From positions 1 to 24,875 of the forward strand of contig CAXIUT010000225.1 in assembly GCA_964035545.1 (NCBI GenBank): a stretch of DNA of 24,875 nucleotides, in the 5' to 3' direction. Position numbers and translations under genes: made by a program. This document shows, in pieces, positions 135 to 24,740 of this stretch. Positions within the stretch are counted from its first letter, which is position 1. Each line of letters opens with the position of its first letter. Below the pieces are notes generated by a model. The model was not told the origin of the DNA, searched no databases, and saw only the letters and a list, made by a program, of their open reading frames with translations. Source of the stretch: Bugula neritina. Its lineage: Eukaryota > Animalia > Bryozoa.

Positions 135-872
135 ATGGAACTCATATGCCCCATTTGTATGGATAACATGATCGGACCTGTCTCTACGCCTTGTGGTCAT
201 ACATTTTGCTGGCAGTGTCTTGATGAAGCTCTCATTTTATCTTCAGGTACTCTTAAATTAAAAAGCAGTTTGCCCCGTTTGTCGACTTAACATCGAGAAA
301 GTCTTATTTATTCGATGCATTGAACTTTAAGCCATAATAAGAAAGTAGTTATTGATAGACAAAGTTAAATTCGCAAAAATAATCCCTAGATCGAACCAAT
401 CTATAACCGTAGAGTGTAGTTGTTTGAACAATGGTTGTCAAAAAGATATCTGAAAGTTGGTCAAGTTCATGCATCAGATCTGATAGATGTCAAAGATACA
501 TAAGGTATCTGGTGTCCTGCTGTTGTTAAAAATGTTATTAAAAATAATAAAAATGTTTCACTTTTAATTCATTATATTGGATGGAGTACTCTATATGATG
601 AAGTTATCGAGATTGGATCCCAGAGATTAGCCAGCTATCATCTATATACAGGACGGACCAAGTTACCAAGGTATCATTTAGTAGGTTAATCTCAACTTCA
701 AGGCTATGTCTTAGGTTTAGAGGCTGAAGTTGAAGGAAATCAATAAGAAGAGTAAGAAGAAGAGATTGATTTGGTGAGTGAAAGTGAGAGTGAAAGAAGT
801 TAGTAGGAAGTTGAAAGAGAATATTTTATTGAGTCTTCAATACCTATGGAGAGGTGCTATGAGGAATAATGA
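135..872 (+). CDS. C3HC4 RING finger protein with a C-terminal Tudor/MBT-like domain and acidic tail (putative E3 ligase); introns 247-268 and 364-389
   Basis: MELICPICMDNMIGPVSTPCGHTFCWQCLDEAL..VCPVCR RING motif, then LIDVKDT(TAA)GIWCPAVV..LIHYIGWSTLYDEVI..RLA; two GT-AG introns (22 and 26 nt) restore the frame; TGA at 870-872. Confidence 0.88.
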
Positions 873-1020
873 TCTTTAACAAAGCAATTAAATCATATCA
901 TGAATTCAATATTACTTCTATCTATGAATAAATATTTTTGACTGTTTGATAATTATTGACTTTTTAATTAATATTGATTTTATTCTTTTACTATAATTAA
1001 TTCTTGCAAATAATCAACAA

Positions 1021-1908
1021 ATGGAAATAGTTAAATAAGAAAAAGAAAACCAAGTTTTGCTAAAAAAGACTTAATAATAAAAGGTAGATCAAAATAAACC
1101 TCTTCTTGATAATTTTTTTAAACTACTAGGTATAGGGAGGAAAGAATAAGAATTCAAGATAACCTTTGAATAAATTTTGATTAACCTTAAAGCTAAAAAA
1201 TATAAAAAAGTAGTTGTTTTATCAGGAGATGAAATGAGTTCAGTGATTTCAGACTAAAAAATGAAAAACAGAGGTAAAATATAAGAATAATAATTACCAT
1301 ATTCTGAAGCTATTTTTGAGATAGAATACTTTAAAAAGAATCCTAAACCTTTTATAAAACTTTGTAAAAACAAACTAACTAAATTAAATGAACCAACTAA
1401 TATTCATAACTTTATCAAAAAATTAAATGATAAAGGAATTTTACATATGAATTTAACTCAAAACATTGATGATCTCTAGCTGAAAGCAGATATTCCTCAA
1501 TAAAAAATTATTCAAGTTCAAGGAAACATGAGAAATGTTTATTGTATCGAATGCCTAAAAGAAGCTGATCTAGATTTATGGAAATAAAATATAAAGAAAG
1601 ATTAAATTCTATTGTGCTAAAAATGTTAAGGTTATGTAAAGCCAAATATCACTTTTTTTGGTTAAAGACTTCCTGAAGAATACAAAAGTGCCAATAAAAT
1701 ACTATTTTAAGCTGATTTGATAATAATAATAGATTCTTCTTTACAAAGAGCTCCATTTGCCTTTCTATCTAAAATTATTCCAGATAAAATTCCAATACTA
1801 TAAATAAACCAAGAATAAACTCTTCAAAAAAATAAAAATAAAGCATGTATATCAGGAAAAATTGAATAAAATATCAAGATGATAATGTAAAAGCTTTAAT
1901 GGTTGTGA
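1021..1908 (+). CDS. Class I sirtuin (SIRT2/Hst2-like) homolog, probably catalytically inactive, 295 aa
   Basis: Uninterrupted frame with TAR read-through; motifs LPYSEAIFEIEYFKKNPKPF, TQNIDDL, CIEC..CxKC zinc ribbon, VKPNITFFGxRLP; the GAGIS and HG motifs are altered. Confidence 0.9.
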
Positions 1909-1972
1909 TATCTATAAAATCTAACCCTTTATTAATATAATATCAATATCAGTATTAAAGTACAAAATAATT

Positions 1973-3797
1973 ATGCAAGCATATTAATAATAGCGAAACC
2001 TCTAAGCATAAATAACTTCTAACATTGAAAATTTATAACAATTTTATGGTCTTAACCCAATCAACTCATTAAAACACCTGGTCGATATTATTCTTGATCC
2101 TAAAAGATCATAATAATTATTCAAACAACGCAACATAACCGTCTCATCGATTTTTCAATCGAGAAAAGATCCATAATAAATCAATAAAGAACATATCATT
2201 CTGTTTGCCAATAAATATACCTATGAAAAACTCGTATAAAAGTTTCCTAAACCCAGAGGATAAACCAACAGAATGCTCATCAACATCCTCTAACAAAAAC
2301 TCTCAAAATAAACTATTAATAGCCATCAAACCAGAAAAAATATCTGGCTACTTGCCTCAGGAGCACGCTTCAATCTTCTCCACCACAAAGGTCTATATCA
2401 ACAGTTACTAGAATATGATAACTACCCAGATTACTTCATTAGATCAATAAAGCAGGACATCAGCCGGACAGTAGCCAAAAGTCAAACTTCTTAAGCATAG
2501 TTATAATCTCTTTTTAATGTTCTAATTGCCTTTTCAAGAAGAAATCCTTTTGTAGGTTACTGCCAAGGTCTCAATTTCGTTGCTTATTTTTTACTAACTA
2601 TGCAATTCAGCGAATAAGAGTCATTCTGGTTATTAAGTAATATCATATAAAGTGTTATTCCCATGGATTATTACACCAATATGATAGGTGTAGTCTGTGA
2701 TCAACAAGTATTTTTAGCTATTCTTAACAAATTACACCCAGCTATTACTAAAAAATTCGACTAAGTTGGCCTTGATCCATCAGTGCTATCAATTGAATGG
2801 TTTGTTTGCCTTTTTACTTCGTCTCTACCTTTCTATGTAAATTATTTCTCATATAGCTAGTAAAAGTAGTTTGGGATAGATTGCTTATCGAAGGTCCAAG
2901 AGCATTTATCAAAACAGGTATTATTATCATGAGTCACTTTAAATAACAAATATTACAAGTTACTTAATTTCGTATATTTATCATAATATAGATTAAATTA
3001 TATTACTTCTTTAGAAAGGTACTAAACAGTTGACTCTTCCATAATCATAGTTCAACCTTCTTTTCTAAAACTTTTACATCAACCGTTAGGGTTTAATTCT
3101 AGCTCGTACTCTCTATCGCTAGTATCATCTCAAATAAAAACTATCTGATAAACTAGCCAACAGGAAAAGGAGTCCATCAATAAGTGAATGTAATCCAAAA
3201 TGGCCAATTTGTTTAGATACTCTTTAAAAGAATCGAAGACTTAGATAAGAAACAGATATTTGGATATTTAGACAAGGATAGCCTCCAAAAATGGATCCTC
3301 AATATTTACTTAAAACTCAAATCAATTCAACTACGAATAATTAACGTCGTAATTTAAAACCTATCTTAATTAGTCAAAATTTTTAATAATTTGCCAAACT
3401 CAAACCAATTCGATAGTAAAATTAATCCCTCTTTGTTACATAAAACTTTTCAGCATCAAAATATGACAATTTATTCATTTAATAAAGCAGTGACAATAAA
3501 ACTTTAAATATCGGAAGAATGAATCATATTTGCCAAGAAGTAAAGCAATTAAAGGAGCTAAAATAGAAATAGAATAAGAAAGATCCAAGAAGAAGAAGTT
3601 TAATTGTAGTTGAGTAAAATAAAGATAATACTCTTAAAAATTAGAATATAAAGAAAATGATTCATTTTAGTTAATAAAATTAATAAAAAGAATAATAAAT
3701 GTTAAAGAGATCACAGACTGTACTATTTTTCTCTAAATTTTTAAATGATAATACGGAATTGTCCAATATAATAATTCCATCAACTAAAAATAATTGA
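1973..3797 (+). CDS. TBC-domain Rab GTPase-activating protein; introns 2837-2856 and 2972-2991
   Basis: RKNIWLLASGA, IKQDISRT (R finger), NPFVGYCQGLNFVA (Q finger), ESFWLL, WFVCLF, VWD; two 20-nt GT-AG introns; TGA at 3795-3797. Confidence 0.92.
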
Positions 3798-3951
3798 TAT
3801 CAGATAATTTTAATGACAAAATCATATAAAATGACATAAATTATTAATTATTATCAATCAAATAACTTTTATTCAATCATCTAAATCTAGATTAATTATT
3901 ATATCAGTTATCATGTCATAATTAGATATTAATGCAAATCAAACAATACAA

Positions 3952-5157
3952 TCATTGCTCTTGTTTTAACATCAATCCATAGTTTACCACATTTTTATGT
4001 CTCAAAGCCTCATTGATTTCTTTTATAGGAATATTCTTCTTCAAATCTTCTTTCATCTCAACATCTCCTGCCTTCTTTATCGCAGGATCAACAATTGGAA
4101 ACAACTAAGGATTACGTGCCTGCATTCTATTCATCTCCAATAGTCCTCCCAAAGCATAAGCTTTAGCATCATAGTCCAATCTAGTATTCGGCTAGGCACC
4201 CACTCGATCATATCTAGTCGTTACTTGATCCCTAAAAGTAGATAAATTAACATCTACATTGCTCTCATTTATGCGAGTATAATCGATAGGATAAGGATTG
4301 GGATTTGGTCCTAGTCTTTCAGGATAAAATCCAGGTCTATCTAGATGCTTTTCTGCATGAACATGACCAACAGGTCCAGTAGGATATTGAGTTTGAGAGA
4401 AGTTATTGAATTGTCTTTCATCTTGATAAGGATATAACACAGTTTAAAATCCAATGCTATTTCTATTGGCATGTCTTGCTCTTCTTTTATGAAATTGCAT
4501 ATAACCATCATGAGAAGGTTTTAAATGATTTTGATAGTGTTCCTCTAAAGCCTATCCTTCAGCTTTATTCAAATCTTATTTAGAAAGATACCTTTTCTGA
4601 GATATTTTAGTTTATGCAAAAAAACCTACTGAAGAAGTCTCTCTAGGACTCAAAATAGAATAATTTCTAGTATGTTTAGTATCTCCAAATGAATTCTAAT
4701 AACCTTTACTTTTAGAATTCAAATACAAAGAACTCCTCATTGGTTTTACTTGTTCTTTTAAACCTTAGCGCATTGATGTACATGAAGCTCTCATTTTCAG
4801 ATCATGATCTTGAGTAAGTATAGGATGTTTTTAACATACTTAAAATTCTACTATTGCTTTTTTCGTATATTTTTATTTTTTAGAAAAAGACCATGAAGGA
4901 CTACGATTTTTGCCATTATTATGATTAGGATGATATAAAAATTACCCACTTGGAGATGTTATGGAAAATCTAAGATTACCTCTTTTTTATCGAGATATAG
5001 ATGAAAAACCTGAAGTAGATGATTTAATTTTTTTTGGTACAGCTGGTTCACTTTAAACATAAGGAGGATGAGCTGGTGAACTATCATGATAGAATGTTTG
5101 ATCACACAATTTAGCTGATCTAGAAAAATTAGGCCGAGTTGGTGTTTTTAACTTCAT
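3952..5157 (-). CDS. Hypothetical protein, about 401 aa, low-structure and P/Y/R-rich (possibly ciliary)
   Basis: ATG at 5157 to TGA at 3954-3952 is open under the TAR-sense code and contains the 4192..4440 ORF-track fragment; no family recognised. Confidence 0.8.
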
Positions 5158-5279
5158 CGATAAATTTATTTATATAAACTTATTTTATTTATCTTTTAAG
5201 AAAGAGAATTATTCTGATATTAATATCTAAAGTAATAGCTAGAAACGAGAAAGTTACAAAAAAATTAATTAATTTAAAT

Positions 5280-6127
5280 ATGATTCCAAAAATATCTAAA
5301 AGATTACTACATAGCCCAAGATACTATTGTTCGACTAATTTCGTTCCAAAACTTTATGGAAACAACAAATCTGTCGTATCTTTATCTCAATGGTGGAACG
5401 GATAACTTCCTAATCCACCTGATTACTATGTCAGATAAAATTTTGATGCCTAAATAAGTTCAAACTGGACACTAGGAAATGGTATTTTTAGAGTAGTTTT
5501 CTAAGCCTGTCTTAATGATCCCTCTATGGACATAAATATCAACCATTTGAAAAGAAGTGCATCATTGAATAAACTTATTCAGTTGTCAGCTTCATAGAAA
5601 TAAAAATTAGTAGATAATCCATCAACCATCATCATTGTAAGAATTAAGTCATATAGCAACCTACTTTTTCAGTTGATCATACATAAAATAATGAACAAAT
5701 AACTAAAAACATGCTATAAATCGATAAACTTTTTCAACAGGCAGTGGGACTTAAAATATCATATCTGATCAATAATTAAGCTTTAAAACAACCTTCTTAC
5801 ATTCAATAACTCACAAAAAGATTCAAAGCTGTTAGTGCAGATGTTGCCCTCAATGGATAAAAATTGGCTGATATCGTATTTTAACATGGACATCGACTTT
5901 AACATGTATTCTATTCTTCTCCTTTTTAAAAAGACGTGCCACAAGCTGATTTCTAGCAAGTTTTAGCAGCTATGCTAGCAGTTGACTACAAAGGAAAACT
6001 CATTCTTTCAGGAGGAAAAGAATACTAAAATGAAATAAAAGCCTTTGAATAAGCAACTAAAAAAACAGGATTTTCATCTAAATTAGAGTTTTCACTTCAA
6101 ACTGATGGATGGTATACCATGATTTGA
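5280..6127 (+). CDS. Hypothetical protein with a probable mitochondrial presequence; intron 5637-5656
   Basis: N-terminus MIPKISKRLLHSPRYYCS is basic/hydroxylated with no acidic residues; a 20-nt GT-AG intron gives an open frame to TGA at 6125-6127. Confidence 0.75.
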
Positions 6128-6730
6128 TATTATACTTATTTTTAACAATTTATAAATCCATTCTAGTCAAAAACAAATATTTTTGATCTTTATGAAATCA
6201 TTTCGAGCTATTATCTTAAATTTATTCATTGGAAAATATGTATAATTATATTATAATTTTCATCAAATCATCTAATAAAGTTAATATATGATAATTTTAT
6301 CAATATTCTAAGAAAAAAAAAATTAATCAATATCTAAAATATCTGTAATAAATTATTTTAAGTAAGTCGAATTAATAGAATATGTCAAAAAAAAAGCATA
6401 AATAAATAATATATTTTGAAAAAAATTGAATTGCTATCAAATATTGAGTTAATTCGTATTAATCTTTAAAATTGATCATATTTTCTAATTAATAATATAA
6501 AATAACAATGAAAGGAGTAAAATTATTGAAAAAACTAAAATTATATATAATTGTTTGGTTAGAGCATAAATGGATTTTCAAAATAATAAAAATCTTTTTA
6601 TTTTATCTTTTTTTTTACGAATGTATTTTGATATTTTTTTATATAATTTATATTATAAAAGTTGAAATTATTTATATTTTATATTTTGATAGAATAAAAG
6701 TGGTAAAATTATTGAATAATAATAATAAAG

Positions 6731-7567
6731 ATGGATATTAAATAAGCTGAACAATAAAATCTTTATTTGTAAAGAAGATATAAAAAAGTAAATTTCGTAA
6801 GATTTCTCACAAAGTAAATCGTTTAAAATATGAATAAAGAAACCATTCAAGATATCATAGTAAAAAATAATTTCAATTTTTTTAAAACATAACATCTTTA
6901 TATCTCTTCAATGCCTAATAAATATCTAATTAAATTATTTTAAATTATTAGTTAACTATATTCTATAATGCATACAATTTTTCTTTGGAATTGTCGTCCA
7001 AAATAATCCTTTTTTAATAAATTCAATGAACTTCCTTGGAAAAAACTCAGAATATTTCTAACTAACTGTAGAATAGGAAATAATATAGGTAAATATTTAT
7101 CAAATATGCCTCTAGATAGAATTGTCTAATTAAGACTAGCTTCTGAATTGATAAATAATCAAGGTTTAAAATAGTTGCATAAAATTAATCTTCCAAACAT
7201 ACATTCTCTATTTTTCAATAACTTAAATATAACGATTGATGGTCTTAAATTATTCAAAAAAAGGCCCAAAACTTATTTCAAAATGTTTGGCTGTTCTCAA
7301 CAGTTAGGTTTTTAAATCTTTTTTTAAGTTAAATAACTTATGCATTTTATTAATTTTAAGAAAACCTTAGATAGTGTAATAAACTTTGTGATGGGAAAAG
7401 AAAGTTCCGTTTTTATTTATCTTTGTCATATAGCTAAAATCACTCTACCTAAAAAAACAAACCCTTATTTGTTATTTGCAAGTTTATAAAGTAAAACAAT
7501 TTAAGATAAAATTACCTTCATTAATAAAAAAGTTCTTGAAATAATTCAAAATAAAATTGATACTTGA
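6731..7567 (+). CDS. Divergent leucine-rich-repeat protein, 278 aa
   Basis: 279-codon open frame; LRR-like units such as LPWKKLRIFLTNCRIGNNIGKYLSNMPL, LRLASELINNQGLK and LPNIHSLFFNNLNITIDGLK. Confidence 0.65.
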
Positions 7568-7882
7568 TTTATAATTTTGATATTTATTTTTAGTTTTTAT
7601 ATTTTTCCATAAAATATGTTTCTTAGAAAATAAAAATATACTTTTTTTTATGATTCATTTGTTAAACCCATTATATTTTTCATATAAAATAAAATAAAAT
7701 AAAATATTTTACGAAAATAGTTTTTATACCAAAATTAATAGTATTTATAAATAATTCAAAATTGAAAATTAAAATATCATATATTCCATAAATTTACTTC
7801 TTTGGTTAGCAATGAATTTTTGAAAAAATAATATCTTAAAAATTAAAAGGAAATAAATAAATTAGAATAAATAATCTGATAA

Positions 7883-8919
7883 TCATTCAGATCGATCGCC
7901 TTTTTCACGATTGTTTTAATCTTCTGACTTTTTGTTTGGTTTAAATTCAAAGAAATTCATTTTTCCTCGTGCTTTGATTTTTTTTATGTTTTATTCAAAG
8001 AATTATTTATCATTAGGTAATTATTATCTTTTAAAAAACTCCATCATATATTGCTCTAAATCTTAATCTTAATCTTAATCTTCCTACTCACTATTGAATG
8101 GGATATAAAAATTCTTTTTTTCTTGGTTCATCTCATACAATTATTAAGAAGAATATTATTTTTCTATTTTTTATTTTGCTTCTTTAGATTTTGACTTTAA
8201 GATCTCAATAAAATCCGAATTTCTTTCTTTAATAATATTATCATCATAGTTGGAGATAAATGACTACTGACCTTTATCTTCATATTTATCACTGTTACCT
8301 AAATGCAGGTTTAATTAAGGCTATCTAGTCTTGTAATTTTTTTACTCTTCATTCTTTCTCATATTTTTAAAGATGCGTCCTTCAACATTTCTTTGTCTTT
8401 GATTTATCTGGGTATTTTTTTTGATTTTTTTAAATCTTGATAAAGGAATATGGACATTTAGTTAGGATTTTATTTTATTTTGTTTTCCAAAGCCTCGAAA
8501 GCAAAAAAAGACCTTAGATTTCTTACAAGTGTTGAGATATCTATTCCTTATCTTTATCTTCCCTTCAAAAAATATTCATTTAACTCAGTGTGTATTCGAC
8601 GATTGAATGATTTTATGACTAAAAACTTCAGATCAAGCTTCAAATCAAAGTAACCAAGGAATGTTAAATCTTTTTAGAAACCTATAAAAGTACTTTTGGC
8701 CCATTCGAAACTATCCTGACTTATATATGATTTACTTTAGAACTATACCCATATATGACTAGAATATTTGTTGGTTCCTCACTAAGAATGCTTTTAAGAT
8801 TAAGTTTATCATCTTTGTCAAGGTCTGAAGACTAATCTAACACCGATAAAGGTGTCTTTTCTTACATAAAATTTAAATTATTGATAGCTGAAGCTAGTGA
8901 AGTTAGTCTAAATCTCCAT
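7883..8919 (-). CDS. Hypothetical protein with acidic C-terminus; intron 8716-8735; one frameshift at about 8415-8430; start uncertain (8919 or 8867)
   Basis: Long TGA-free frames joined by a 20-nt intron (GTAAATCATATATAAGTCAG) and a 1-nt A-run indel; GAG TAG GAA GAT TAA GAT TAA GAT TAA GAT acidic run; TGA at 7885-7883. Confidence 0.6.
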
Positions 8920-9070
8920 TTCTTATAGTAATATATAAATTATAAAATTTAATATCTTTAAAATTAAGAATAAACTAATCTTTTGGAAATGATTGAAAGA
9001 AAAAAATAGTTCTGGAGTTTGAATTAAGAGATAAATCTTCTAAATATTTTATCAAATAGAAAATATTGTT

Positions 9071-9114
9071 TTTGTTAATTTAAATATAATTTTGTTAATT
9101 TAAATATGATTTTG
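9071..9114. repeat. 20-bp tandem duplication (TTTGTTAATTTAAATATRAT, 2.2 copies) in a divergent intergenic region
   Basis: 9071-9090 and 9091-9110 differ at one base. Confidence 0.85.
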
Positions 9115-9242
9115 CTTTGCTAAAGTTGAAGCTGAAGATAGTTGTAATATTATTTTATACTTTGATTCATAAAAAGTAAGAAATAATTGTTTTCATAATT
9201 AATAATCTTTGAATATTTATTTATTATTAATCAACTTTTGCA

Positions 9243-10442
9243 ATGAATCAAATGAATGATAGATAAAATCTTGATAAAAACTTCATAGGAGGGCCATTCG
9301 ATAGACAAGTTCGAATATAAGATTGGGATCAATAGATCCTTAAAAAACAATCAGTCTTTATCATGGGTGTAGGAGGATTAGGTTCAGTTGTTGCGATCAA
9401 CCTCTTGAGACTAGGAATAGGTAAATTATTTCTTGTTGACTATGACGTAGTTGATATTCATAACTTAAATAGACAACTTATCTTTTCTAAGGCTGATGTT
9501 GGTAAACCAAAAGTATAAGCTGCTAGGGATAATTTATAATTTCACAAAATAATTGATACTTAAATAGAAATTTTTCATGGTAATGCACTAACTAACTGGG
9601 AAATAATCGTTTCTTTTGCTAAAAAATCAACTTTTATCTATAATTGTATTGATTGGGGAGATAAATTTGATCTAGCTGTTTCTACTCTCTGCCTTAAATT
9701 AAAAATACCTCTGGTTATGGGAGGAACCTTTAGCACTTCACTTACAGTTGACTTCTTTCCTGAAAAAGGAAAACCTTGTTATCTATGTACTGAAATGATC
9801 ATGGAAGCTCCCTAAGTATGCAAAACTATAAAGCCTGATACAATACTCGAAATGAAAGATATATCTTTTTTACCTAAAAACAACAATCCTATTAGTAGAT
9901 CTAGCGCTGTAGTTTGTACGATATGTGGGTAATTTATGACTAGTCATTTGCTAAACTGGCTATTTTTGTCTGAATAAAAACCATACAAAGCTAGTAGAAT
10001 TATCTTCTACCATAATACTTTTTAGATTGTTAAATTTTAGTTAGAATAATTCAAAAAATGTCCATATTGCTTTACTCCTTAATAAATTTAAGAAGAAATC
10101 AAAAGAGAAGCTGCAAGAGCTCTTAAGAAAAAAGAATAATAATAGGCTAAAAAGAAATAAGAAGAAGAGCTTAAGAAAAAGGAATAAGAATAAAAATCTA
10201 AAGAAACTTAAAAAGAATCTTAAATAAAGGATTAAATCAAAGAAGAAGATAGAAATTTAAAGCCTGAATAAAACAGCGAAAAAGAAATAAAATAAAAATA
10301 AAAAATTAATTCTGAAGATAAAGGAGATTAAATAATCCAGAATTAAGAATAGATAATTTAAAAAAATGAATAGTAACCTTAAAAAATTGAAAAAGTATCC
10401 TAAAATATTGAAAATTAGTCATAAAAAAAGGTAGATTCTTGA
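9243..10442 (+). CDS. ThiF/MoeB-family (E1-like) adenylyltransferase with a charged helical tail, 399 aa
   Basis: FDRQ, IMGVGGLGS, LVDYDVVDIHNLNRQ, DVGKPKV, NCID, PCYLC and CPYC zinc motifs; no rhodanese domain; K/E-rich C-terminus; TGA at 10440-10442. Confidence 0.92.
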
Positions 10443-10501
10443 TTTATTCCTATTTATTTAAATCAAAATAACAAATATATATTTAATAATTTCATGGACA
10501 A

Positions 10502-11302
10502 TCAGAGTTCTTAATCTGTTGCCTGAGGGTTAGCATCAACCCAATCATATTCAGAATGGTCCTTAATCCAATCCAAAATACCTTGTTTATCTCTTCCTCC
10601 ATTAAAACTTACTGGCTTAACTGACTTATCTTTCCCGTACCAAAGGAGAGTAGGGTATCCTGAGATATCGATTTCATTCACTTCATTCAAAGTTCCATCA
10701 AAATCAGCTAAAATTACATTACTATTTGCAGCTAAAGCTTCAGCTGCAGCAACAAATTCTGGTGCAATTTGCTTACAATGACCACACCAAGGGGCATAAA
10801 CTTTCAAAAGAACTTATCTCTAACTTTCCAAGATCTCTTGCTTGAAACTATTTCCAACTATTACCTTGACTGCCTCATTATTTTCAGTTGGGATAGGAGC
10901 CGACTTAAGGAAAGGTTGAACCTCTCCAGAATTAACCTTATCAGTAAAAGAAGCCAATCCTTCAGCTGAAACATCAAGATCTTCAACTACATATTTTTTC
11001 TTTGCTTCAACAAGATAAACTAATTTGGGTGTTGTATCAACTTGTAAGCCAAGATATTCAGCAAATCGAGTAAAATGATCTTTATCTTGAACTTAATCAA
11101 TCACAGTAAAGACATTGAATTCATCAGTTTAAGATGTTTATTTGAATTGAGCCTTGATATCTTCATTCTCAGGATTGGTAAAGAGAAGGAATGCATTTTT
11201 TTTATCCTTAAAGATTGCGTTGACTGCGTTTTCACCAAAATCAACATATTCAGCGTTTGAAAAAACGACGAAGAAAATAACCAATAATGCTATGACTTTC
11301 AT
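10502..11302 (-). CDS. Protein disulfide-isomerase family protein with one active site, 266 aa
   Basis: Signal peptide MKVIALLVIFFVVFSNA; PFLKSAPIP linker; VKVIVGNSF; YAPWCGHCK; GYPTL; C-terminal D-(TAA)-E-L-TGA resembling an ER-retention motif. Confidence 0.95.
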
Positions 11303-11358
11303 GGTAAGATAATATTGAATATTAAAATCAGGTTAATATAATGAAACTATTTATCTTT

Positions 11359-11447
11359 GGGGTTGGGGTTGGGGTTGGGGTTGGGGTTGGGGTTGGGGTT
11401 GGGGTTGGGGTTGGGGTTGGGGTTGGGGTTGGGGTTGGGGTTGGGGT
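11359..11447 (+). repeat. Internal telomeric tract (GGGGTT), about 15 units; right end of segment 1
   Basis: Perfect G4T2 array with no following C4A2 tract. Confidence 0.98.
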
Positions 11448-12679
11448 CGAGATTATTTTCTCGCTTTCAGGATGCACTACTCAAGAGCTAAACTGGCCTC
11501 TAACATTTTAAATTTTGTTAAACCTTAGTAGAACCATAAGCCTGGCTCTCCCCAAGAATGTCTTCTCGCTGTCCAAAGGGCAACGAAAAAACATTGAAAC
11601 TCTCCTCCTACTCCCCAATCTTACATCTCCTACTCCATCTTACTCATCTTTCTAAATGTACTTTCTTGTCTGAAAAGTTCCAAGAAAACCTCATCTTTTT
11701 TATCTTCTTTGAATTCTGAAAATCCCTTAAACATCTTAGGATTTTCATAAAGCCCATCAGTCTTAAAGTTAAAATCTTCAGCTTTGAAAACAAAGTTATC
11801 ATCTTCAATAACGGATGGTGTGCTGTTTTTTGTTGATAGTAATAATCCAGAACCTTCAATAGTTTATATTTCCATTCTTTATTCTACATTATGTTCAATT
11901 GAAGCAGATCTAGGTCTCTCCTACTTCTTTGATCGTTTTGAGAGAGAACTACTCTCATTAAGAGAATTTTTTCCTGATGCAATTTATTCTTCAAGACTCA
12001 ATGAATCCGGATAACGCATATTTTCTTCACATAACATTGTTTGTTTACGTTTTTTGCAATTCTTTCTAAAATCTTGCATCATCACTATTAAATGATCTAG
12101 ACTCTCATCTGCTTCTCCATTTTCAGTTATTTGTTCTTGTGAAATGAATTGAGCAATAAATGCTAAAATATTCTTAGCTAGTTGAGCAGTATCGTTTCCT
12201 GATAGTCTAACTCTTTTATCGTAGTGTCCATCAACTACAGCCATCAATTTGCTGAGATAATCTGACTCAAAATGCCTAATGATCTTGAATTATTTTCTAT
12301 TTTTTTGTTGACCCAAATAAACATTGATTTTAGTAAGAACTCTTCTAACCGAGGAGTAAAAATAGTTTTTAACTGCATTATCTGTTCTTCCTGGTAAAAA
12401 AGCAGCAATTTGAGCCCATTTATTTCCAATTTGAGTTTGCATCTCAAACAAAGTTTTTTATTCTTTCTAAGTCCATTCTTCACGATTAATAGCAGGATTA
12501 AGTTGATGTTGCCATCTTTCACGGCATTGTTTTCCAGTTCTGATTCTGTTAGTTTTTTATTGAAGAGTTTTAGAAACTTAAATCCATTTAAATCTATCTT
12601 GAGAACAACTAGACATCATCTCAATGATGATTTGATCTTCTTACTGAGTCCATCCTCTTTTTGAAGTGTTGTTTGACAT
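11448..12679 (-). CDS. R2R3-Myb transcription factor; 3' end runs into the internal telomere junction
   Basis: WTQxEDQII..KW..RTGKQCRERWQHQLNPAINREEWT..IGNKWAQIAAFLPGRTDNAVKNYFYS; no in-frame TGA before 11447 as written (a 1-nt homopolymer correction near 11586-11591 would give a stop at 11469-11467). Confidence 0.93.
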
Positions 12680-13030: not shown

Positions 13031-13166
13031 TAATTTAAATTTAGAATCGAACTCTTAATAGTCCTGCTGTTAAGTCAAAGTTCTCAAAGAAAATGATGCA
13101 AGTGTTTAAAATTCTCTTCAATGTTGATGTTTTATGCATAAAGATAAGTTTTTATTAATAATTACG

Positions 13167-14191
13167 ATGATTTTGATTCCGATCCTGCTCATCTTTATCT
13201 CCTATTTATTGTTCAGCTGGTTCCTCTTTTTCTTTCCCTTCATAGTTCATAGACCTCATAAATACTCGAGAGCACCTATAATTGCTTAATCTTTAGCTAG
13301 ATAAAAAGTGTTGAAGATTGCACATAGAGGAGGTTGCAGAATTAAGACTGAAAACACAATCTAAGCTTTTTAAGAAGCTAGCAAATATAGCGATATGCTT
13401 GAAATGGACGTATGTGAGACTAAAGATGGAGTTTTAGTAGTTCATCATGATCATGATCTTGAAAGAACATGTGGAGTCAAACAATATATCAGAAATTTAT
13501 AATACAAGGAATTACCCTGCTTCAAAAAATAAATATAACTAAATTTTGCTCCTAAAGGGTTAACTGTTTGTTCACATTAAGAAAAAATACCTACATTATA
13601 AGAGGTATTTAAGAAATTTCCAAGTATGCCCATGAATATAGAACTAAAAACTCCTCAACTGCAGCTATTAAAGAAATGATTACACTAATAAAAACTTATA
13701 ATAGACTAGATAAGACAATAATAGGCATCCGAGGAGATGATCAGATTTCTCTTAAGCAAATGGACAGAAAAATTTTAACATTTATGAATGATAAAGATTT
13801 CTTCTTCTATTTTACTAGTATGATAACTGGATTACTCCCCTATTTATATGTGGAAGATCATTCTATGCAGTTACCTCTATGGACAGAGTAAAGCTATCAT
13901 TGGAAAATAAGAGAATGGGGAGATAATTGGAAAGTACATCTTTTTTTTAAAGTATTAAAATGGATTCTAAACCCTCTTATGGGATTGCTTGCTTATCATC
14001 TAAAAAAAAGAGGAATTATTACTATTTTTTGGGTATGTAATTGCGAAGATGACTATAAAAGGGCAATCAAATATGGCGCTAAAGGAATAATGACTGATAA
14101 TCCCTAATTGTTGAACTCTTATTTGAAAAAATAAGGAATGAGTTTTAAAGAAGATTCCGAATAGTAAATAAAGAGAAAGAAGGATGATTGA
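13167..14191 (+). CDS. Glycerophosphodiester phosphodiesterase, GDPD1/GDE4-like (lysophospholipase D type); one frameshift at about 13654-13679
   Basis: N-terminal hydrophobic segment; IAHRGG, ENTI, MLEMDVCETKDGVLVVHHD..LERTCG, IPTL.EVF..FP..PMNIELK, FWVCN, GAKGIMTDNP. Confidence 0.93.
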
Positions 14192-14237
14192 TATGATATT
14201 TATCTTGATATATATTGCAATAGTAAATCATTTAATA

Positions 14238-17368: not shown

Positions 17369-17495
17369 AGACATGATTTTCTCTTGTCTATTCTTTTAAA
17401 TAAAACTGACTCCTAAAATAATCACTTTGATAACTTATCTCTTCGAAATAACCCCTTTTCACTGATATTTATACTTATTCAAAGAATCATTCATA

Positions 17496-18077: not shown

Positions 18078-18129
18078 ATATTAGATTTGATGTTAAAATG
18101 GTTGAAATAATTGATAATTTTATTGACTA

Positions 18130-19055
18130 ATGAGATCATCATTCTGTTTAGATTCCGTAGCTAACTCCAGAGAAATCAGCCTCTCTCCACACAACAACTC
18201 ATCATCAAAACAACTATACTCTTTTAGTAAGATAGTAGATTCAAAAAAAATAACTCATAGTACTCATCATTCTATCAAGCTGCGATAGTATCTATAACAT
18301 ACCATCAACCTTCAGAACCTCAGGCACGACCATGGGATATGGAAACAAACACGATTTCACTAAAGATCTATCAGGTTCACCAGGAGCAACTAAATACAAT
18401 ATCAATACAATCTTCGACAATAACAAAACCAAAAAGAAAGGATTTACTCTCTATTAAAGCAGAGATGTACATTTAGATATATTTAGAAACTTCCAGATAG
18501 AGGACATATTCCTCTAGATCCTCTAAAAGTACCTGCCCCTTCACACTATCAAAATCTCAAAGTGAACAAAGGACCAACCTTCTCCATGAGAAAAAGATTG
18601 CCTGTCATCGATAAAACCATGTCAATCGATGTTCAAAATCATAATCCAGGAGCTGGACGCTATTAAAATCCATAATCTCTATCACCTAGAGGTAAATACA
18701 GCGTCTCCAAACATAGAGGAACTGGTGCTTCTTTGTTTAACCCTAAAAGGTCTTCAAGATTCTTCTAATTCAGTATCTTTGATGATATCTAGAAAATAGA
18801 AATCCAGGACCAGGAAAATATAATGAAGTTAGTCCAATGAGCAATCGTGGAAAATACACGATCTCTAGTTTCCAAGGTCAAGGCCAAAGACTCTTTGATA
18901 AAGAAAGAAGATAGAACACATTTGATTTCAAAGCAAGAAAGAACATCAACCCAGGACCAGGATCATATCGAGCTCCTTCAGATTTTGGTCAATACGATGG
19001 AAATGTCTACACGAATAACAGGTTATCAAATACATCAAAAAAATATAAGTTATGA
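18130..19055 (+). CDS. SHIPPO/ODF3-like PGP-repeat ciliary protein; introns 18260-18279, 18467-18486, 18773-18792; 1-nt indel near 18229
   Basis: KQLYSF, GYGNKHDFTK, SPGATKY, VPAPSHY, NPGAGRY, NPGPGKY, NPGPGSYRAPSDFGQY repeats; three 20-nt GT-AG introns; TGA at 19053-19055. Confidence 0.88.
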
Positions 19056-19090
19056 TTCATATTTTATTATCTCATTATAAATTGAAACCG

Positions 19091-20433
19091 ATGAGTCAAA
19101 GAAAACAAAATCGATGCGTAGATCATCAACAATAAATAGTAGCTCTTTGTATTGACTAAAGTTGCAAAGAAAAAGTAAAAGCAGTTTGTCCACTTGAACT
19201 TTACAACGAACACTTGGATCATAAATTCTAAAACATAGCAAAAATACATTCAGAATGGTCTTTATATCATAAAGATGCAGACCAAATAAAATAAAATATA
19301 TCAAGGTAGGGCATATTAAAATATATGGATGGAATTATTGACTAGTTAATGACTAAAATCAAAGAACATCTGTTTTTATTAAGAAAATAACTTGATATCA
19401 AAATGGGATTATACTATAATAGCAAACCTGTTGATAAAATCAGATCGGCTCTAAATGGACTTAGCAAATCTCTTGAATAAAGATTTTTAGAACTCAGACA
19501 TTAAGAAATCTAAGATGCTAAATTTTTTATTTAAATTTATGGAGTTAAAAAATTAGTTAATGATACCTTCCAACAAAGATAAAACTTTGAAAAAGAGATC
19601 TTAATAGCCTACTCGAAAATAAAAGAATAAATGTTTATGGATTATCCCAAATTCAATGCCTTAGTCAAAGCTAAAGAATATGAATATTGTGAAATAATCA
19701 AAGCTCAAAAGATATAGATCACAGTAATGAAGGAAAAGTTATCAGAAATATCAGGTGGGCATTAAAAATTAGCCTAAGAACATAAACAACTATCATATGA
19801 ATATGCCAGAACAACTAACGAATTGAAAAATAAATAAGCTGCTCTCGTATAAACAAATAACAAGCTAAACATCATGACAAATAAATTCAACTAACAGGCC
19901 CAAGAAGCTATCCTTAAAGCCAGATAAATCAAATCAAAAAACATACTAGGAACCTATCCCAGCAAACACCTCTTCAGAGTTAGTGATAGAATCATCAAAA
20001 CAGGAGATCAAGAAATGGATTGGCCAGGACTAGTATAAGTAGGCTAAGCTATTGGGAAGATATTTGTCAAATTAACAAGATTCGATGTTGGTTCATGGGT
20101 TCTTGTGGGCTGTATGTTCAAAAGTCAATGCTAAAAGAACTAGTTCTAATTCGATAACTATAAAAATATAGGTCATGGTACTTATTTGCTTGATAGCAAC
20201 CGTTGGAGTTATTCTGATCATGACGAAGACTACAATGCCAAGCCACTTGGGTTTGAATATGCGCATAATGACATAATTAAAATTGAAGTGTTTCCAGAAG
20301 TGATAAGATTTTCAAAAATGGCTTCGGATGGGAAGAATAAAAATTCTAACTACCATATCGTAAGAAAGAAAACGATGAATTTTACTTTTGCCTTGGAGTG
20401 AAAGGATAACATACAGAGCTTACGTTGGTTTGA
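19091..20433 (+). CDS. B-box-like zinc finger + coiled coil + SPRY-like domain protein (1-nt indel near 20340; stops at 20401 as written)
   Basis: CVDHQQ..ALCID.SC..AVCPLEL..HLDH; long heptad-rich middle; WVLVGC..IGHGTYLLDSNRWSYS..F.Y.HNDIIKI..FYFCLG beta-rich C-terminal domain. Confidence 0.75.
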
Positions 20434-20652
20434 TCGGAAGTGATCAATATATATTAAACTAGTATATATTTTAATATTAGAATTATAAACATAGATTCTT
20501 TTAAAGAAAAGATAGTCTCTCTTTAAGCTTTCTAAATAAAGTGTTAAAATAAACATTCTTGTATGCTAAACTCAAATTTCTTTTGATTTGATGCAGTAAC
20601 TGAAAGGCTACTTCTGATAGCTCAAAGGAAAAGTTAACGCTATGAGTTATTG

Positions 20653-21360
20653 ATGCATGCTTTTTTGAAAAATGTTTCTATATCTCTAGATAAGTCTTTA
20701 GAACTTAAAAATAGAAATATTTCTAATGATTTTTGGAGATTTAGAGATTGCTTTAAAAGAAACTTCAATAAGAAAATTTAGTCTTCATTTCAAAAAATTG
20801 ATAAAAAAATAAAAGTTAATAAAAAGGAGATCTATCTTTTATAAGTTGACTATCAATGTTCTTTCTTGCTAAATAAGTTCAAATATGAAGTAAAGTTCAA
20901 GATTTAAAGATTTAGAATTGAAAAAACTCTTTAGTTTTGTTTTTTAAAAAAATCAATCTTTTAACACCTAATTGTATCATTTAGTTTAAATATTTTAAAT
21001 CACTTGAGATAGATAAATTACGAATATTCACGATAAAAAACAGAGATAAGATGTAGACAAAGGTAAATATTGAGGTAAAAACAAAGAGTTAAAAATAAAT
21101 AATCATTGTATGATCTCATTATCATCTAAATAAGACTTTTTCTCAGGACGAGTTCGCGTATTTTATTTTTTCTAAGGAAGATCTTCCCATAAAAAACTAA
21201 AAACATCAGGGTCAATAGACTTAGTCAAATTATCAATCTTTCCATTCGTAATTCTAACTTTAAAATTTTACTAAACTATTTGTTTTTGTTCTGTTCGAAA
21301 GCTATCGTCTTCGGAAAAGTTGTTGAGTTGAGCCAAATTTCCTGGAGGGTCAATACTTGA
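20653..21360 (+). CDS. Hypothetical protein (236-codon open frame; true end may be near 21110)
   Basis: TGA-free frame from 20587 to 21357; the 3' part is the exact antisense of the 21103-21366 ORF. Confidence 0.35.
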
Positions 21361-21366
21361 TTGCAT
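21103..21366 (-). CDS. Small hypothetical protein, 87 aa
   Basis: MQSSIDPPGNLAQLNNFSEDDSFRTEQKQIV..SIDPDVFSFLWEDLP; higher GC than the flanks. Confidence 0.45.
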
Positions 21367-21391
21367 AATTAAATATCAAGATGACGTCACA

Positions 21392-22098
21392 ATGATAAAC
21401 AATAGGAATCATAACAACTCAGTAAAACAAAGGTCAATCAATAGTTTAAGAGTCTTTTATGCTTTCGATCTATATAAGAAATCAGAATTAATCAATAATA
21501 ACTTAAACAAAATAACAAATAAGCAAAATGATTAAAATATGATAATAAGGTCTTTTAAAAATATATAGCTTATTTTTTTGTCTTAATTTATCATTTAAAA
21601 ATTATTTTTATCAAATGATATTTTACTTTCTAAGTAAGCATTTCTGATAATTTATTAAAATCAGAATGATAAGGATAAACCTAAATACTAGATCTAATTA
21701 AATTAAGACATAAATAAATAATCTCTTAATTTCATATTCATGGGTCATTTTGATTAATTTCCGGTTCTTTGTTAAAGCTATATTAAGCATTGGATATTTC
21801 TTTTCGAGGAACTTTATTTTTATTCCTAAATATTCTATGACTGTCTAATTTAATTTATTATACACTCACCAAGTCACGCTCCTTTTATGGAGTTGATAAG
21901 TTGAGTGAAGGATATGACATTTTGATACGATAGTATTTAGAACCTTCTTTTTCATAATAAACAAAAGAAAATTATTTCCAAGCATTAAATTACTATTATT
22001 CAGATGGAGAAGGAAATCTTTCGGGCAAAAAGTCTATAGTAATTCTATTTTTTATTGATTCAATTGTATTAATTAAATAATATATCTTGAATAGTTGA
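21392..22098 (+). CDS. Hypothetical protein (1-nt indel near 21840)
   Basis: Open frame from ATG 21392 to about 21900, with an overlapping frame SFYGVDKLSEGYDILIR..YYYSDGEGNLSGKK to TGA at 22096-22098. Confidence 0.45.
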
Positions 22099-22118
22099 AA
22101 ATTAAATATTCATGATAA

Positions 22119-22199
22119 GGGGTTGGGGTTGGGGTTGGGGTTGGGGTTGGGGTTGGGGTTGGGGTTGGGGTTGGGGTTGGGGTTGGGGTTGGGGTTGGG
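22119..22199 (+). repeat. Internal telomeric tract (GGGGTT), about 13.5 units; right end of segment 2
   Basis: Perfect G4T2 array with no following C4A2 tract. Confidence 0.98.
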
Positions 22200-22451
22200 A
22201 TAGAATAGATGAAGTATTAAAATTGTATGTTTGAGGTCTCAAGCCTAAGGATTTATATTTCCTTATTGCTGATTACCTCGATTTATTTCATTCTCTTCTC
22301 TATTCTACTAACTGATTTTTGATGTTCTTGATAAAGAATACAGACAAAATTCATGTTTTTTTTGACTATTAATTAAATGCGAATGATCGTGTTCATAATT
22401 TTCATCTTATTAGAAATTTCCACTCTCAAAAGTTATGCCTCTGTTACTCAT
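22200..22451 (-). CDS. Short or 3'-truncated hypothetical gene abutting the telomere junction
   Basis: MSNRGITFESGNFEEDENYEHDHSHL..; stops near 22232 as written, while the other two frames stay open into the telomere. Confidence 0.35.
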
Positions 22452-23022
22452 AAGTCGTAAATAGATCTGTTTTTTAAAGAAATTAATAATATCAAAATAT
22501 CTAAAATACTAAATTATAAATAGCTCATACTTTATATTTTTCAAGATATTATTGATTGAAAAATGATCAGAAAAGTAAATATTCATCAAAATTTCAATTA
22601 AACTTTCAAAAAATATTTAATTATCTTTTATATCCTTTACTGATTAAGTTTTAAATCAACTAAAAAAGGTTCTAAAGGCATATTAATCATCTTTATTCAC
22701 TATCTTTACACTTAGGCGCGAGATATTTTTTTTGTTAATGATTTTTTCTTCTTGAATATACTACATTTAGTCATGGAAAGGACTAGAACAAGGCTAAATA
22801 TCAAAACTATCACAGCCTCTCTCTTCTTACAGTAGTAAAGGACATAGATTCAATGGTTTTTCTGATTATAAAATATACTATTTTCAAAGTTCATAATTAA
22901 ATAAGACTATTAGATAATAAATAAAAACATTTTATAAAAAGAAAAAATTCTAATTTTATTCAATTTTTATCAAAAAAAGATAGTTTATCATAAATATATC
23001 TAGTATAAATAAAATATTATAA

Positions 23023-24740
23023 ATGGAGAACAGCATAATAAGACAAATCATGAGCAATAAAAAAAATCTTACTAAACTCCACATCTACATAATCAAAAAA
23101 AGATCATCAAATTAAAATCCTCAATACTCCCATCGACTATAATCTCAATCCAAAATACCTATCATCACCAGCCTACCAAAATGCAAAAGTTAAAGCAAGC
23201 AATCCAATCGATAACAAAATGCAATCAACCAACACATTAACTTCTAAGCTGAAGCAAATCATACAAAAAAATAATTTGTCAGAATTCGGAGCATAAAATC
23301 CTAAAAAAATAGTTTAAGAAGAAAAGTAAAAAGTTAATAAAATAAAGTCATCACTGTCACCCCGCATAAAAGCTATCAAGCTCCTAAATAGAAACAAAAG
23401 AATGTTATGAAAAGCTATCTCTAATATATCAGAGCATCAGATAAACAATATGTATAGAAAATTAATTTCAATCAACTCAGAAAAAGAAGTAGAAGACAAG
23501 GTCTTACAAAGAAATAAAAATAACTTATTTCGCTTTTAGATCAAGTCTTTACTGTTATATTTTAAGTATAATTGTTACTATAAAGAAACTTTCTTTTTAC
23601 AATTAAGATCTCAATAAATCACTTTAAAATTGTTGCTTATATTATCTACAATGCCATTAAAAAGTAAAAATATAACTTCTGCTTTCAATCTACTACCCTA
23701 AACTACTTCACACTAAACTAAGACCATACCTAATCTACCAACGTCAAGTCATCTACTATATCCTCTTTCTCACAAAAAGCCAACAAATGTAAAAACTTGA
23801 ACAAAATCATATTTAATCACTAAAATTATCAATCAGACATATCAAAGAATGTCTTGGTATTTTAGTTAAGGTATAATAATCTCTATCTGTAGCCCATCTT
23901 CCAAATGGAAGAGGAAGTTATTAATAATATGAGCTAAACTTTTAAGATATTGAAGTCTGTGGGAGAAATGGAAAAGAAATTGACTATTATTGAAAAATAA
24001 ACGCAAAGAAAGTATGTTTCTATGTATTTAGTTTTATCAAATCTAATAAAGGACTATCATAAATATAAAATAGCTTTATAGAACTACTTAATTCTAAAAC
24101 ATAGTGGCCTCTATAGATCCTAACTTAAAAATAAATATAAATCTCTTGGAAATATTTCAAAATACCACCTATTCCTTTTCTCCCAGCACAAAAAACATAA
24201 AAATCATACACTCTAGTATTATAAATTTAAGATATGTTAATCTATTATGACAGAACTAATAAAATATTGAAATACCGACCTTATCTTGATATATTTTTAT
24301 CAAAAATAAAATAATTTTATTAGATAGTAATCTACACTTCAGCACCACACTAATTCAGTTAAACAATCATCAAACAAATATAAAAAGTAGGTAAATATTT
24401 TGATTATCATCTCTGTTAATCACATCTAGTTCTTCACTAAGGAAAAACTGTTAAAGATTTTTTCAAGATTAGGAAGAAATGATAAAAAATTAGTCATTGT
24501 AGATACTATTTATCCAGCTAATAAACAATTTAAAACAAATTTTATATAACTATCTAGTTGGTATGGAGATAAAAGCGATCGAGCTCTTTCTCGGTTAACC
24601 AACATTTTGTGGGGTAGTTTTTATGTCATTTAGAACTGCAATTGAATAAAATAGAAGATGTAAGAGAATATTTAAAATAAATAAATTAAAATCTTCATCT
24701 AATTGATGAAAAAGATGAAGAAGAGATCTAAGAAAGATGA
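23023..24740 (+). CDS. FCP1/SCP-like (NIF, HAD superfamily) domain protein, likely a pseudophosphatase; intron 24614-24633; indels near 23995 and 24460
   Basis: PPIPFLP..YTLVLxIxDMLI..YRPYLDIFL..FYxIVIYTSA..VKDFSRLGR..LVIVD..SWYGDKSDRAL..DVREYL; TGA at 24738-24740. Confidence 0.88.

Follow-up and report, generated by a model that had tools for sequence, protein, structure and literature searches.

Genes and telomeres of the window

The window, that is the whole stretch of 24,875 nt that we analyzed, carries (CCCCAA)n at one end (positions 1-84) and (GGGGTT)n at the other (24789-24875), both read directly and recovered as repeat matches, so that it is telomere-capped on both sides. It is a ciliate macronuclear minichromosome with C4A2/G4T2 ends that was picked up alongside the sequenced animal, whose 216 Mb assembly holds it. 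The C4A2 repeat is of the Tetrahymena type and accompanies the table 6 genetic code in other oligohymenophoreans. When the assembly was searched at the DNA level for paralogues of the window or a second haplotype that could serve a synonymous-change test, the only one found was a 296-bp stretch of contig C291 that is 98% identical to it.

Pfam searches were performed on stop-free pieces. For TBC, GDPD and NIF, single exons or pieces were submitted one at a time, with each of the two NIF frames handled by itself, and read-through translations with X at TAA and TAG served scripts only. The gene families that the earlier note had named from the letters alone were recovered, SIR2, RabGAP-TBC, ThiF, Myb and GDPD by Pfam and NIF by a whole-genome family search, and Pfam also recognized Thioredoxin. 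On the plus strand, translation reveals a RING-finger gene (135-872) that has a frame change or an intron near 240-330, encodes an acidic C-terminal tail in which TAA and TAG alternate with GAA and GAG, and ends at TGA. A class-I (SIRT2-like) sirtuin lies at 1021-1908 (plus strand; Pfam SIR2 and a score of 232 bits against a profile built from 95 sirtuins). Its TGA-to-TGA frame contains 23 TAA and one TAG, and stops at TGA 1906-1908. The RabGAP-TBC domain is encoded at 2312-2857 (plus strand) by one or more exons of an intron-containing gene, recognized by PF00566 on the piece 2507-2614 and by translation, with TAA at 2615 and 2762.

Four genes lie between 3952 and 11302. The first, of unassigned family (3952-5175, minus strand), is 51-64% identical to its orthologues in five groups of relatives, shares with them its stop (TGA 3952-3954) and carries TAG at 4105, 4192, 4552 and 4696, mostly opposite GAA, GAG or TAR (TAA or TAG) in the relatives. 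The second (5525-6127, plus strand), defined by orthologue comparison, ends GWYTMI-TGA in the window and in the relatives and carries TAG at 5654 and at 5954, where the relatives have GAA or GAG. The third (9243-10442, plus strand) encodes a ThiF-family, E1-like adenylyltransferase with a Lys/Glu-rich tail, identified by Pfam, by a profile of ThiF ORFs and by codon pairs; it stops at TGA 10440-10442, its TAA 9516 faces GAG, GAA or TAG in all six groups of relatives, and its TAG 10023 faces GAA, GAG or TAA in five of them. The fourth (10502-11302, minus strand; Pfam Thioredoxin and translation) encodes a protein disulfide isomerase-like (PDI) protein with a signal peptide and a thioredoxin domain containing WCGHC.

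Beyond these lie a Myb-repeat gene (11633-12679, minus strand; Pfam Myb on the piece 12293-12457 and translation) and a glycerophosphodiester phosphodiesterase (GDPD) gene in two frames or exons (13302-14191, plus strand; Pfam GDPD on the piece 13374-13499) with TAA at 13362, 13371 and 13599. A divergent NIF/FCP1-like phosphatase in two frames (24099-24645, plus strand) was assigned by PF03031 matches and column tallies. In the translation of the Myb gene a TAA (12641) falls within W-T-Q-TAA-E-D and further codons within W-T-TAG-K-E-TAA, at what we take to be acidic positions of Myb repeats.

In-frame TAA and TAG and the ends of genes

The eight TAA and TAG codons on which the earlier note had built its reading lie where it had placed them and in the contexts it gave, among them QNIDDL-TAG-LKADIP (TAG 1477), NITFFG-TAA-RLPEEY (TAA 1663), TMQFSE-TAA-ESFWLL (TAA 2615), VGKPKV-TAA-AARDNL (TAA 9516), KRGWTQ-TAA-EDQIII (TAA 12641-12643, minus strand), EKIPTL-TAA-EVFKKF (TAA 13599) and FY-TAG-IVIYTS (TAG 24321). 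The Gln residues of TQNID, GYCQG, NLNRQ and GKQCRER are indeed encoded by CAA in every case, and the mixing of TAR with GAA and GAG in acidic runs was seen in the tails of both the RING-finger and the ThiF genes.

Among the 2,212 codons of the window that are supported by homology we counted 90 TAA and 14 TAG in frame and no TGA, whereas TGA occurs 45 times in the +1 frame and 102 times in the +2 frame of the same codons. Such a number of in-frame TAR with no TGA far exceeds chance. Three gene ends could be compared with the relatives, and all three are at TGA in the window and in the relatives. Table 30 requires UGA as the only terminator, and this is what the codon counts and the three gene ends gave, in agreement with the earlier observation that the genes stop at TGA.

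It is very improbable that TAA and TAG also act as ambiguous, context-dependent terminators, as in the Condylostoma-type codes that occur in ciliates (PMC4967479), or that the in-frame stops reflect pseudogenes or read-through. The gene ends that bear on ambiguity number only three, but none of them departs from TGA, and the PDI gene has a TAA three codons ahead of its terminal TGA, with the conserved -EL end coming after it. This C-terminus is D-TAA-GAA-L-TGA in the window, and one relative has N-GAA-TAA-L-TGA, a swap after which both proteins end in -EEL if TAA encodes Glu. Pseudogenes are excluded by the presence of 104 in-frame TAR in 2,212 codons of genes that are clearly under purifying selection across six groups of relatives.

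The amino acid encoded by TAA and TAG

To compare codons between orthologues, four genes of the window were aligned codon by codon with the syntenic orthologues of six related metagenomic ciliate groups. Eleven metagenomic loci, syntenic with window positions 3955-12226, yielded 3,656 aligned codon pairs from lineages that are not independent of one another. Public metagenome copies of close relatives exist only as stop-to-stop fragments. The window TAA (134 pairs at 52 sites) were found opposite Glu 42 times, TAR 32 times, Gln 10 times, Asp 6 times and Lys 4 times, and the window TAG (35 pairs at 13 sites) opposite Glu 13, Asp 7, TAR 5, Lys 2 and Gln 1. The pairing profile of the two codons is the same as that of the window's own GAA (Glu 44, TAR 23, Asp 14, Lys 4, Gln 3) and GAG (TAR 10, Glu 5, Asp 5), used as controls. 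In the reverse direction, TAR of the relatives faces 33 of the 143 GAR codons of the window (23%) but only 3 of 97 CAR, 7 of 338 AAR, 6 of 197 GAY and 1 of 123 TAY. The share of Glu codons facing TAR is significantly different from that of Gln (Fisher, p = 1.1e-5), Lys (p = 6.3e-13) and Asp (p = 1.2e-8) codons. TAA and TAG also substitute for one another at single sites between the window and the relatives. One site, TAG 9333, is variable in the relatives, with CAA, GAT, TCG, CGC and AAA.

The second test decoded the codons from profile columns of the sirtuin, ThiF and NIF families, with a ThiF profile built from bacterial and archaeal ThiF ORFs. For the TAA of the window (n = 23) Glu was the best residue, followed by Lys (-5.4 nats), Asp (-6.8) and Gln (-11.3), and Glu was also best for the two TAG. 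When the paralogues of sirtuin and NIF that this ciliate carries on further contigs were added, TAA reached n = 74, with Glu best, Lys at -14.9, Asp at -36 and Gln at -40, and TAG n = 25 (2 from the window and 23 from other contigs), with Glu best, Lys at -6.1, Gln at -13.2 and Asp at -15.2. The lesser sampling of TAG that the earlier note had pointed out is apparent in both tests. Sense codons used as a control in these runs were correctly decoded in 20/23 to 44/51 cases. The method misreads sense codons when n is small (CAG was read as Glu, n = 9), and is consequently weak if taken alone.

In the per-site profile table the two strongest Glu columns are those of the sirtuin TAG 1477 and TAA 1663 (E 0.63 and 0.49). 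The Glu column of the NIF phosphatase DxD-E-T motif, which is occupied by E in 24 of 25 homologues, is encoded by TAG in one paralogue, by TAA in three and by GAA or GAG in two. At NIF TAG 24321 the profile column is shared between E and D (E 48, D 41 and T 23 of 114), and four TAA of the NIF gene occupy columns in which Asp is invariant or nearly so, both Asp of the DxD motif among them. Discordant sites were also found: TAA 1255 lies on an F column, TAA 1801 on an L column and one NIF TAA on an invariant R. Since the sirtuin and the NIF protein of the window are divergent copies, these stray TAA may reflect lost constraint. The host sirtuin was discarded as a comparator because its only well-detected exon is of class II (SIRT4-like, NVDHLH), the wrong subfamily.

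A split code in which TAA encodes Lys and TAG Glu, as in Oligohymenophorea sp. PL0344, is slightly less probable still than ambiguous termination. It is known within the same ciliate class (PMC10553269), and Lys is the second-best residue for TAA in the profiles, with a modest margin when the window is taken by itself. The margin over Lys nevertheless widens once all contigs are included, window TAA is paired with Lys about a tenth as often as with Glu, TAR is rare opposite the Lys codons of the window, and TAA 9516 is replaced by GAG, GAA or TAG in every group of relatives, with TAA and TAG interchanging at single sites. Least probable of all, and hardly to be entertained, is the Tetrahymena and Paramecium code (table 6) with Gln at both codons: it would fit the telomere repeat and the minority of TAA opposite CAA or CAG (10 of 134 pairs, 7 of 52 sites), but not the scarcity of TAR opposite Gln codons, the log-likelihoods of Gln for either codon, the use of CAA at invariant Gln positions or the Glu column of the DxD-E-T motif.

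Our data support Glu as the residue encoded by both TAA and TAG, and Gln, Lys and Asp are rejected. This assignment rests on orthologue codon comparison and profile-column decoding, two independent tests on the genes of the window that agree with the earlier claim of Glu instead of Gln; profile alignments assigning Gln or Lys, which the earlier note had named as contrary evidence, did not emerge, the profiles giving Glu for both codons. Nearly half (about 46%) of the codons for Glu in the homology-supported genes of the window are then TAR.

tRNA genes, the organism and its code

Two intact tRNA(CUA) genes were found elsewhere among the contigs of this ciliate (C10:16787-16858 and C256:3981-4052); each has a cloverleaf and a B box and is followed immediately by a T-run terminator. 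Of the two anticodons proposed for a search, CUA was therefore recovered, whereas pattern and covariance-model searches of the assembly found no tRNA(UUA). The ciliate's canonical tRNA-Glu and tRNA-Gln were likewise not found in the assembly by these searches, and no additional ciliate tRNA came from T-arm and D-arm patterns or from a covariance model built on the tRNA(CUA) pair. An initial loose tRNA pattern gave chance matches in the host only. Candidate suppressors with 'TTTAAG' on contig C73 were rejected as tRNA-Leu(UAA) on an AT-rich, probably mitochondrial contig. Identity of the tRNA(CUA) to host tRNAs (Glu 44/69, Asp 45/69, Gln 40/69) does not discriminate the isotype, and the tRNA(CUA) covariance model scores host Glu, Gly, Asp, Lys, Gln and His tRNAs at 56.7-59.8 bits without separating them. 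The acceptor stem of the C10 gene matches host Glu/Asp tRNAs at 10 of 15 positions and Gln at 4 of 15.

The 18S copies scored in the assembly are those of the host. A 20-nt stretch of the 18S 3' end, queried in the form of non-animal eukaryotes, had no match in the assembly, and the peritrich-specific primer Peri974F (PMC4103560) had none within 3 mismatches. As the searches of the assembly detected no 18S of a ciliate, the peritrich identity of the organism is something we infer.

The window is almost certainly a ciliate macronuclear minichromosome in which UAA and UAG are sense codons for Glu and UGA is the sole terminator, as in table 30. UAA and UAG act as ordinary Glu codons, interchangeable in evolution with GAA and GAG and placed on Glu or acidic profile columns, and UGA, missing from reading frames and marking conserved gene ends, is the lone terminator. 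The tRNA(CUA), together with a tRNA(UUA) that escaped detection or with wobble reading, would be charged with Glu; the release factor would have lost recognition of UAR; and the organism would be a peritrich.

UAR=Glu has been recorded for peritrichs, and Vorticella, Opisthonecta, Carchesium polypinum and Campanella umbellaria use table 30 (PMC10553269, PMC4967479). The code of the window does not differ from the peritrich nuclear code, which has the same UAA and UAG as Glu and UGA as sole stop in ciliate macronuclear DNA. It is thus already known, and the window adds a data point and no new principle. Oligohymenophorea sp. PL0344, probably of the same class, likewise reads UAG as Glu through a tRNA(CUA) and has UGA as sole stop, but its UAA is Lys where that of the window ciliate is Glu. 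Tetrahymena and Paramecium share with the window ciliate the joint reassignment of both UAR codons, UGA as the only stop and the G4T2 repeat, whereas UAR is Gln in table 6 and Glu here.

Since the code has been described before, the value of the result is chiefly correct annotation. Standard, bacterial or TAR=Gln gene calling would shatter or mistranslate every gene on the ciliate contigs of the assembly, and the code flags such contigs as non-host DNA within an animal assembly. The result would gain in importance only with a placement of the organism outside Peritrichia, which we consider unlikely; UAR=Glu would then have a second origin, in an unsampled lineage of oligohymenophoreans that combines C4A2 telomeres with multi-gene minichromosomes. 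Our literature search found no published peritrich macronuclear genome with which to compare these two features. If the organism is a peritrich, the contigs would be a first look at the architecture of peritrich macronuclear chromosomes.

The window and its coding frames

The window is a ciliate macronuclear chromosome that was swept into an animal genome assembly. This follows from its telomeric ends, (CCCCAA)n at the start and (GGGGTT)n at the finish of its 24,875 bp, and from its low GC content (19-32%), set against the animal-type rDNA arrays on the large contigs of the assembly, whose 18S includes ...GCTACTACCGATTG... and has 55% GC. The source assembly comprises 216 Mb in 321 contigs, the window being contig C234, and the host tRNA genes, rRNA genes and a few exons served as comparators.

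A Pfam scan of the stop-free pieces confirmed the SIR2, RabGAP-TBC, ThiF, Thioredoxin, Myb and GDPD domains, and a whole-genome family search confirmed the NIF domain at 24210-24609. Every TAA or TAG codon (TAR) cited in the earlier note had the correct coordinate and sequence context, and the four motifs whose Gln it had called invariant all use CAA. The 2,212 homology-supported codons of the window include, in frame, 90 TAA, 14 TAG and no TGA; the remaining two frames of the same stretches contain 45 and 102 TGA. It follows that TAA and TAG serve as sense codons and that TGA is kept out of the coding frames.

Meaning of TAA and TAG

An 83-residue piece of the ThiF gene (9243-10442) was used as a query against public metagenome contigs. 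This led to the identification of 11 loci, 70-83% identical across the piece, which sort into six relative groups. Several loci are syntenic with the window, in the order gene 3955-5175 (minus strand), gene 5525-6124, ThiF and PDI (10502-11302, minus strand); one of them, L180, alone extends the synteny to the start of the Myb gene. We aligned TGA-delimited frames of the window, with X at TAA and TAG, to these loci and retained, at each place, the best frame that did not overlap another. Codon pairs were counted once per relative group and site, 3,656 in all; they are not independent events, the groups being akin to each other. Window TAA formed 134 pairs (52 sites) with Glu as partner in 42, TAR in 32, Gln in 10, Asp in 6 and Lys in 4, and window TAG formed 35 pairs (13 sites) with Glu in 13, Asp in 7, TAR in 5, Lys in 2 and Gln in 1. 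The control codons gave Glu 44, TAR 23, Asp 14, Lys 4 and Gln 3 for GAA (116 pairs) and TAR 10, Glu 5, Asp 5, Gln 1 and Lys 1 for GAG (27 pairs), and the main partners of CAA and AAA were Gln (45 of 89 pairs) and Lys (171 of 284). In the other direction, a TAR codon of a relative faces 33 of 143 window Glu codons (23%), compared with 3 of 97 Gln (Fisher, p = 1.1e-5), 7 of 338 Lys (p = 6.3e-13), 6 of 197 Asp (p = 1.2e-8) and 1 of 123 Tyr codons. Site-level counts agree with the pair counts: Glu occurs in at least one relative at 25 of the 52 TAA and 6 of the 13 TAG sites, and Gln at 7 and 1. At TAA 9516 (GKPKVXAA) the six groups have TAG, GAG, GAA, GAG, GAG and GAG, and at TAG 10023 the relatives have GAA, GAG, TAA, GAG and GAG. 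The pair counts and these single sites indicate that TAR acts as a synonym of GAA and GAG.

The earlier note had proposed a profile-based codon inference, and we ran a Codetta-like test for which full-length homologues were gathered starting from the stop-free pieces: 150 representatives for a 61-residue sirtuin piece (those named being SIRT2-type proteins from slime mould, rotifer, insect and green alga), 61 bacterial and archaeal loci for ThiF and 120 NIF-domain proteins. HMMs were built from these sets, the ciliate genes were aligned with X at TAA and TAG, and log emission probabilities were summed over confidently aligned columns. Glu scored best for both codons. In the window genes the margins were K -5.4, D -6.8 and Q -11.3 nats for TAA (n = 23) and D -2.5, K -4.6 and Q -4.9 nats for TAG (n = 2, a weak result if taken alone). 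Over all contigs of the ciliate, that is the window genes with the sirtuin of contig C228 and eight NIF paralogues, they were K -14.9, D -36 and Q -40 nats for TAA (n = 74) and K -6.1, Q -13.2 and D -15.2 nats for TAG (n = 25). Of the sense codons, 20 of 23 were decoded correctly with the window genes and 44 of 51 with all contigs, so that the procedure is informative but imperfect at small n. The clearest columns in the sirtuin (1021-1908) are TAG 1477 (NIDxL-E, E 0.63) and TAA 1663 (FFG-E, E 0.49). The NIF DxD-E-T column, E in 24 of 25 homologues, holds TAG on contig C93, TAA on C162, C190 and C197, and GAA or GAG on C178 and C85. Pooled NIF columns have E 0.16-0.19 at TAA/TAG sites, matching 0.18-0.20 at GAA/GAG sites and unlike CAA/CAG (Q 0.16-0.28) and AAA/AAG (K 0.31-0.34). 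Orthologue pairing and profile columns both support the claim that TAA and TAG encode Glu.

The rival most worth excluding was a code of the PL0344 type, with UAA as Lys and UAG as Glu (PMC10553269), since Lys comes second in the profile test; it is clearly excluded by the orthologue partners of TAA, 4 Lys against 42 Glu, and by the 2% of Lys codons that face TAR. Gln for both codons (NCBI table 6) is rejected, being ruled out by the orthologue and the profile tests alike. Context-dependent stops or pseudogenes do not fit, as they conflict with the conserved gene ends and with purifying selection across the relatives.

Three gene ends could be compared with the relatives, and none was found at TAA or TAG. 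The last codons of gene 5525-6124 read ...GWYTMI-TGA both in the window and in group C of the relatives, and ...GWYTMT-TGA at the same position in group B; gene 3955-5175 has a terminal TGA in the window and relatives. PDI closes with D-TAA-GAA-Leu-TGA in the window, where a relative has N-GAA-TAA-Leu-TGA. Both therefore end -EEL, and TAA is read through three codons ahead of the final TGA. These ends and the lack of in-frame TGA bear out TGA as the stop codon.

Some TAA codons fall on hydrophobic or otherwise invariant columns (1255, the F of sirtuin PDFRS; 1801, an L column; and one NIF site, an invariant R), all in the two degenerate-looking genes of the window, the sirtuin and NIF. The SIRT2-like sirtuin has QG for the catalytic HG (IIQVQGNM vs lveaHGsf) and has LSGDEMSSVISD-TAA-K in place of the NAD-binding motif GAGIStsAGIPDFRS, so that GAGIS is lost; otherwise its fold aligns well (232 bits), and judged by these residues it looks catalytically dead. 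The NIF/FCP1-like gene (24099-24645) has TAA at both Asp of DxDxT and at two more Asp columns that are invariant or nearly so, and scores far below nine paralogues on other contigs (E 1e-8 vs 1e-26 to 1e-47); its product may be a pseudo-phosphatase. Neither Gln nor Lys suits the four TAA on Asp columns as well as an acidic residue does (Asp to Glu). As the general meaning of TAA, Asp is rejected (6 of 134 pairs, -36 nats).

Chromosome structure and neighbouring contigs

Two internal (GGGGTT)n tracts of telomere length, at 11359-11447 and 22118-22199, are oriented like the right end, and a gene end lies some 55-75 bp away from each. L180 continues collinearly on either side of the first, from the start of PDI into the Myb gene, with no telomere; in place of the 89-bp tract it has unique DNA of about 95 bp. 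A physical internal telomere therefore does not fit; the tract looks like a cap that belongs to a shorter chromosome isoform and was laid over a longer one in the assembly consensus, which fits alternative fragmentation.

The 6-8 kb region of the window has 19% GC, and about 3 kb of very AT-rich DNA (6130-9200) separates ThiF from the gene that ends at 6127; this stretch has no counterpart in the relative loci L179 and L180, where the flanking genes adjoin. Near-identical DNA is shared with another contig only at 3909-4204 (296 bp, 98% identical to C291:28902-29197). A degenerate C4A2 telomere in the relative locus L181 stands beside the position matching about 3950, and a fragmentation site may lie at or near 3909-4204. 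Elsewhere in the assembly, contig C73 (70.6 kb), probably the ciliate mitochondrial genome, has an AT-rich tRNA-Leu(UAA) in two copies and a tRNA-Phe, and on C214 there are 11 tightly clustered tRNA genes of bacterial or organelle type.

tRNA genes and the identity of the ciliate

The earlier note had also suggested looking for tRNA genes with UUA or CUA anticodons. Within the window there is no tRNA gene. When the whole assembly was searched by pattern, two genes with CUA were found, on the ciliate contigs C10 (21 kb; 2288-2359 of the cut-out L188) and C256 (12 kb; 2182-2253 of the cut-out L189), but none with UUA; nor were a ciliate tRNA-Glu or tRNA-Gln found in this assembly, which includes only part of the ciliate genome. 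Both tRNA(CUA) genes fold into a regular cloverleaf and have a GGTTCGATTCC B box, a common CAGATATA element about 10 nt upstream and 6-7 T immediately downstream, as expected of a polymerase III terminator. Their T arms are nearly identical, 21 of 69 positions differ and the acceptor stems are almost wholly different. The acceptor of the C10 gene (U1-A72, 5'-UCC...GGA-G-3') has the form known from eukaryotic tRNA-Glu and tRNA-Asp, and matches host Glu/Asp at 10 of 15 positions and host Gln at 4 of 15. Its anticodon stem is nearer host Gln, and its overall identity to host tRNAs is non-discriminating (Glu 44/69, Asp 45/69, Gln 40/69). A decoder for UAG thus exists, with a putative Glu ancestry.

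A search of the assembly for ciliate 18S detected none, and a published peritrich-specific primer, Peri974F (PMC4103560), had no match within 3 mismatches, as would be expected if the rDNA is absent. NCBI table 30 is the code in which UAA and UAG mean Glu and UGA alone terminates; it has been described in Vorticella, Opisthonecta, Carchesium and Campanella and is regarded as of single origin in Peritrichia (PMC10553269, PMC4967479). The window uses this same code, and its genetic code is already known. The ciliate is very probably a peritrich, because to our knowledge no other ciliate lineage reads both codons as Glu. The chance that it belongs outside Peritrichia is small, and it is there, if true, that the interest of the finding would lie.
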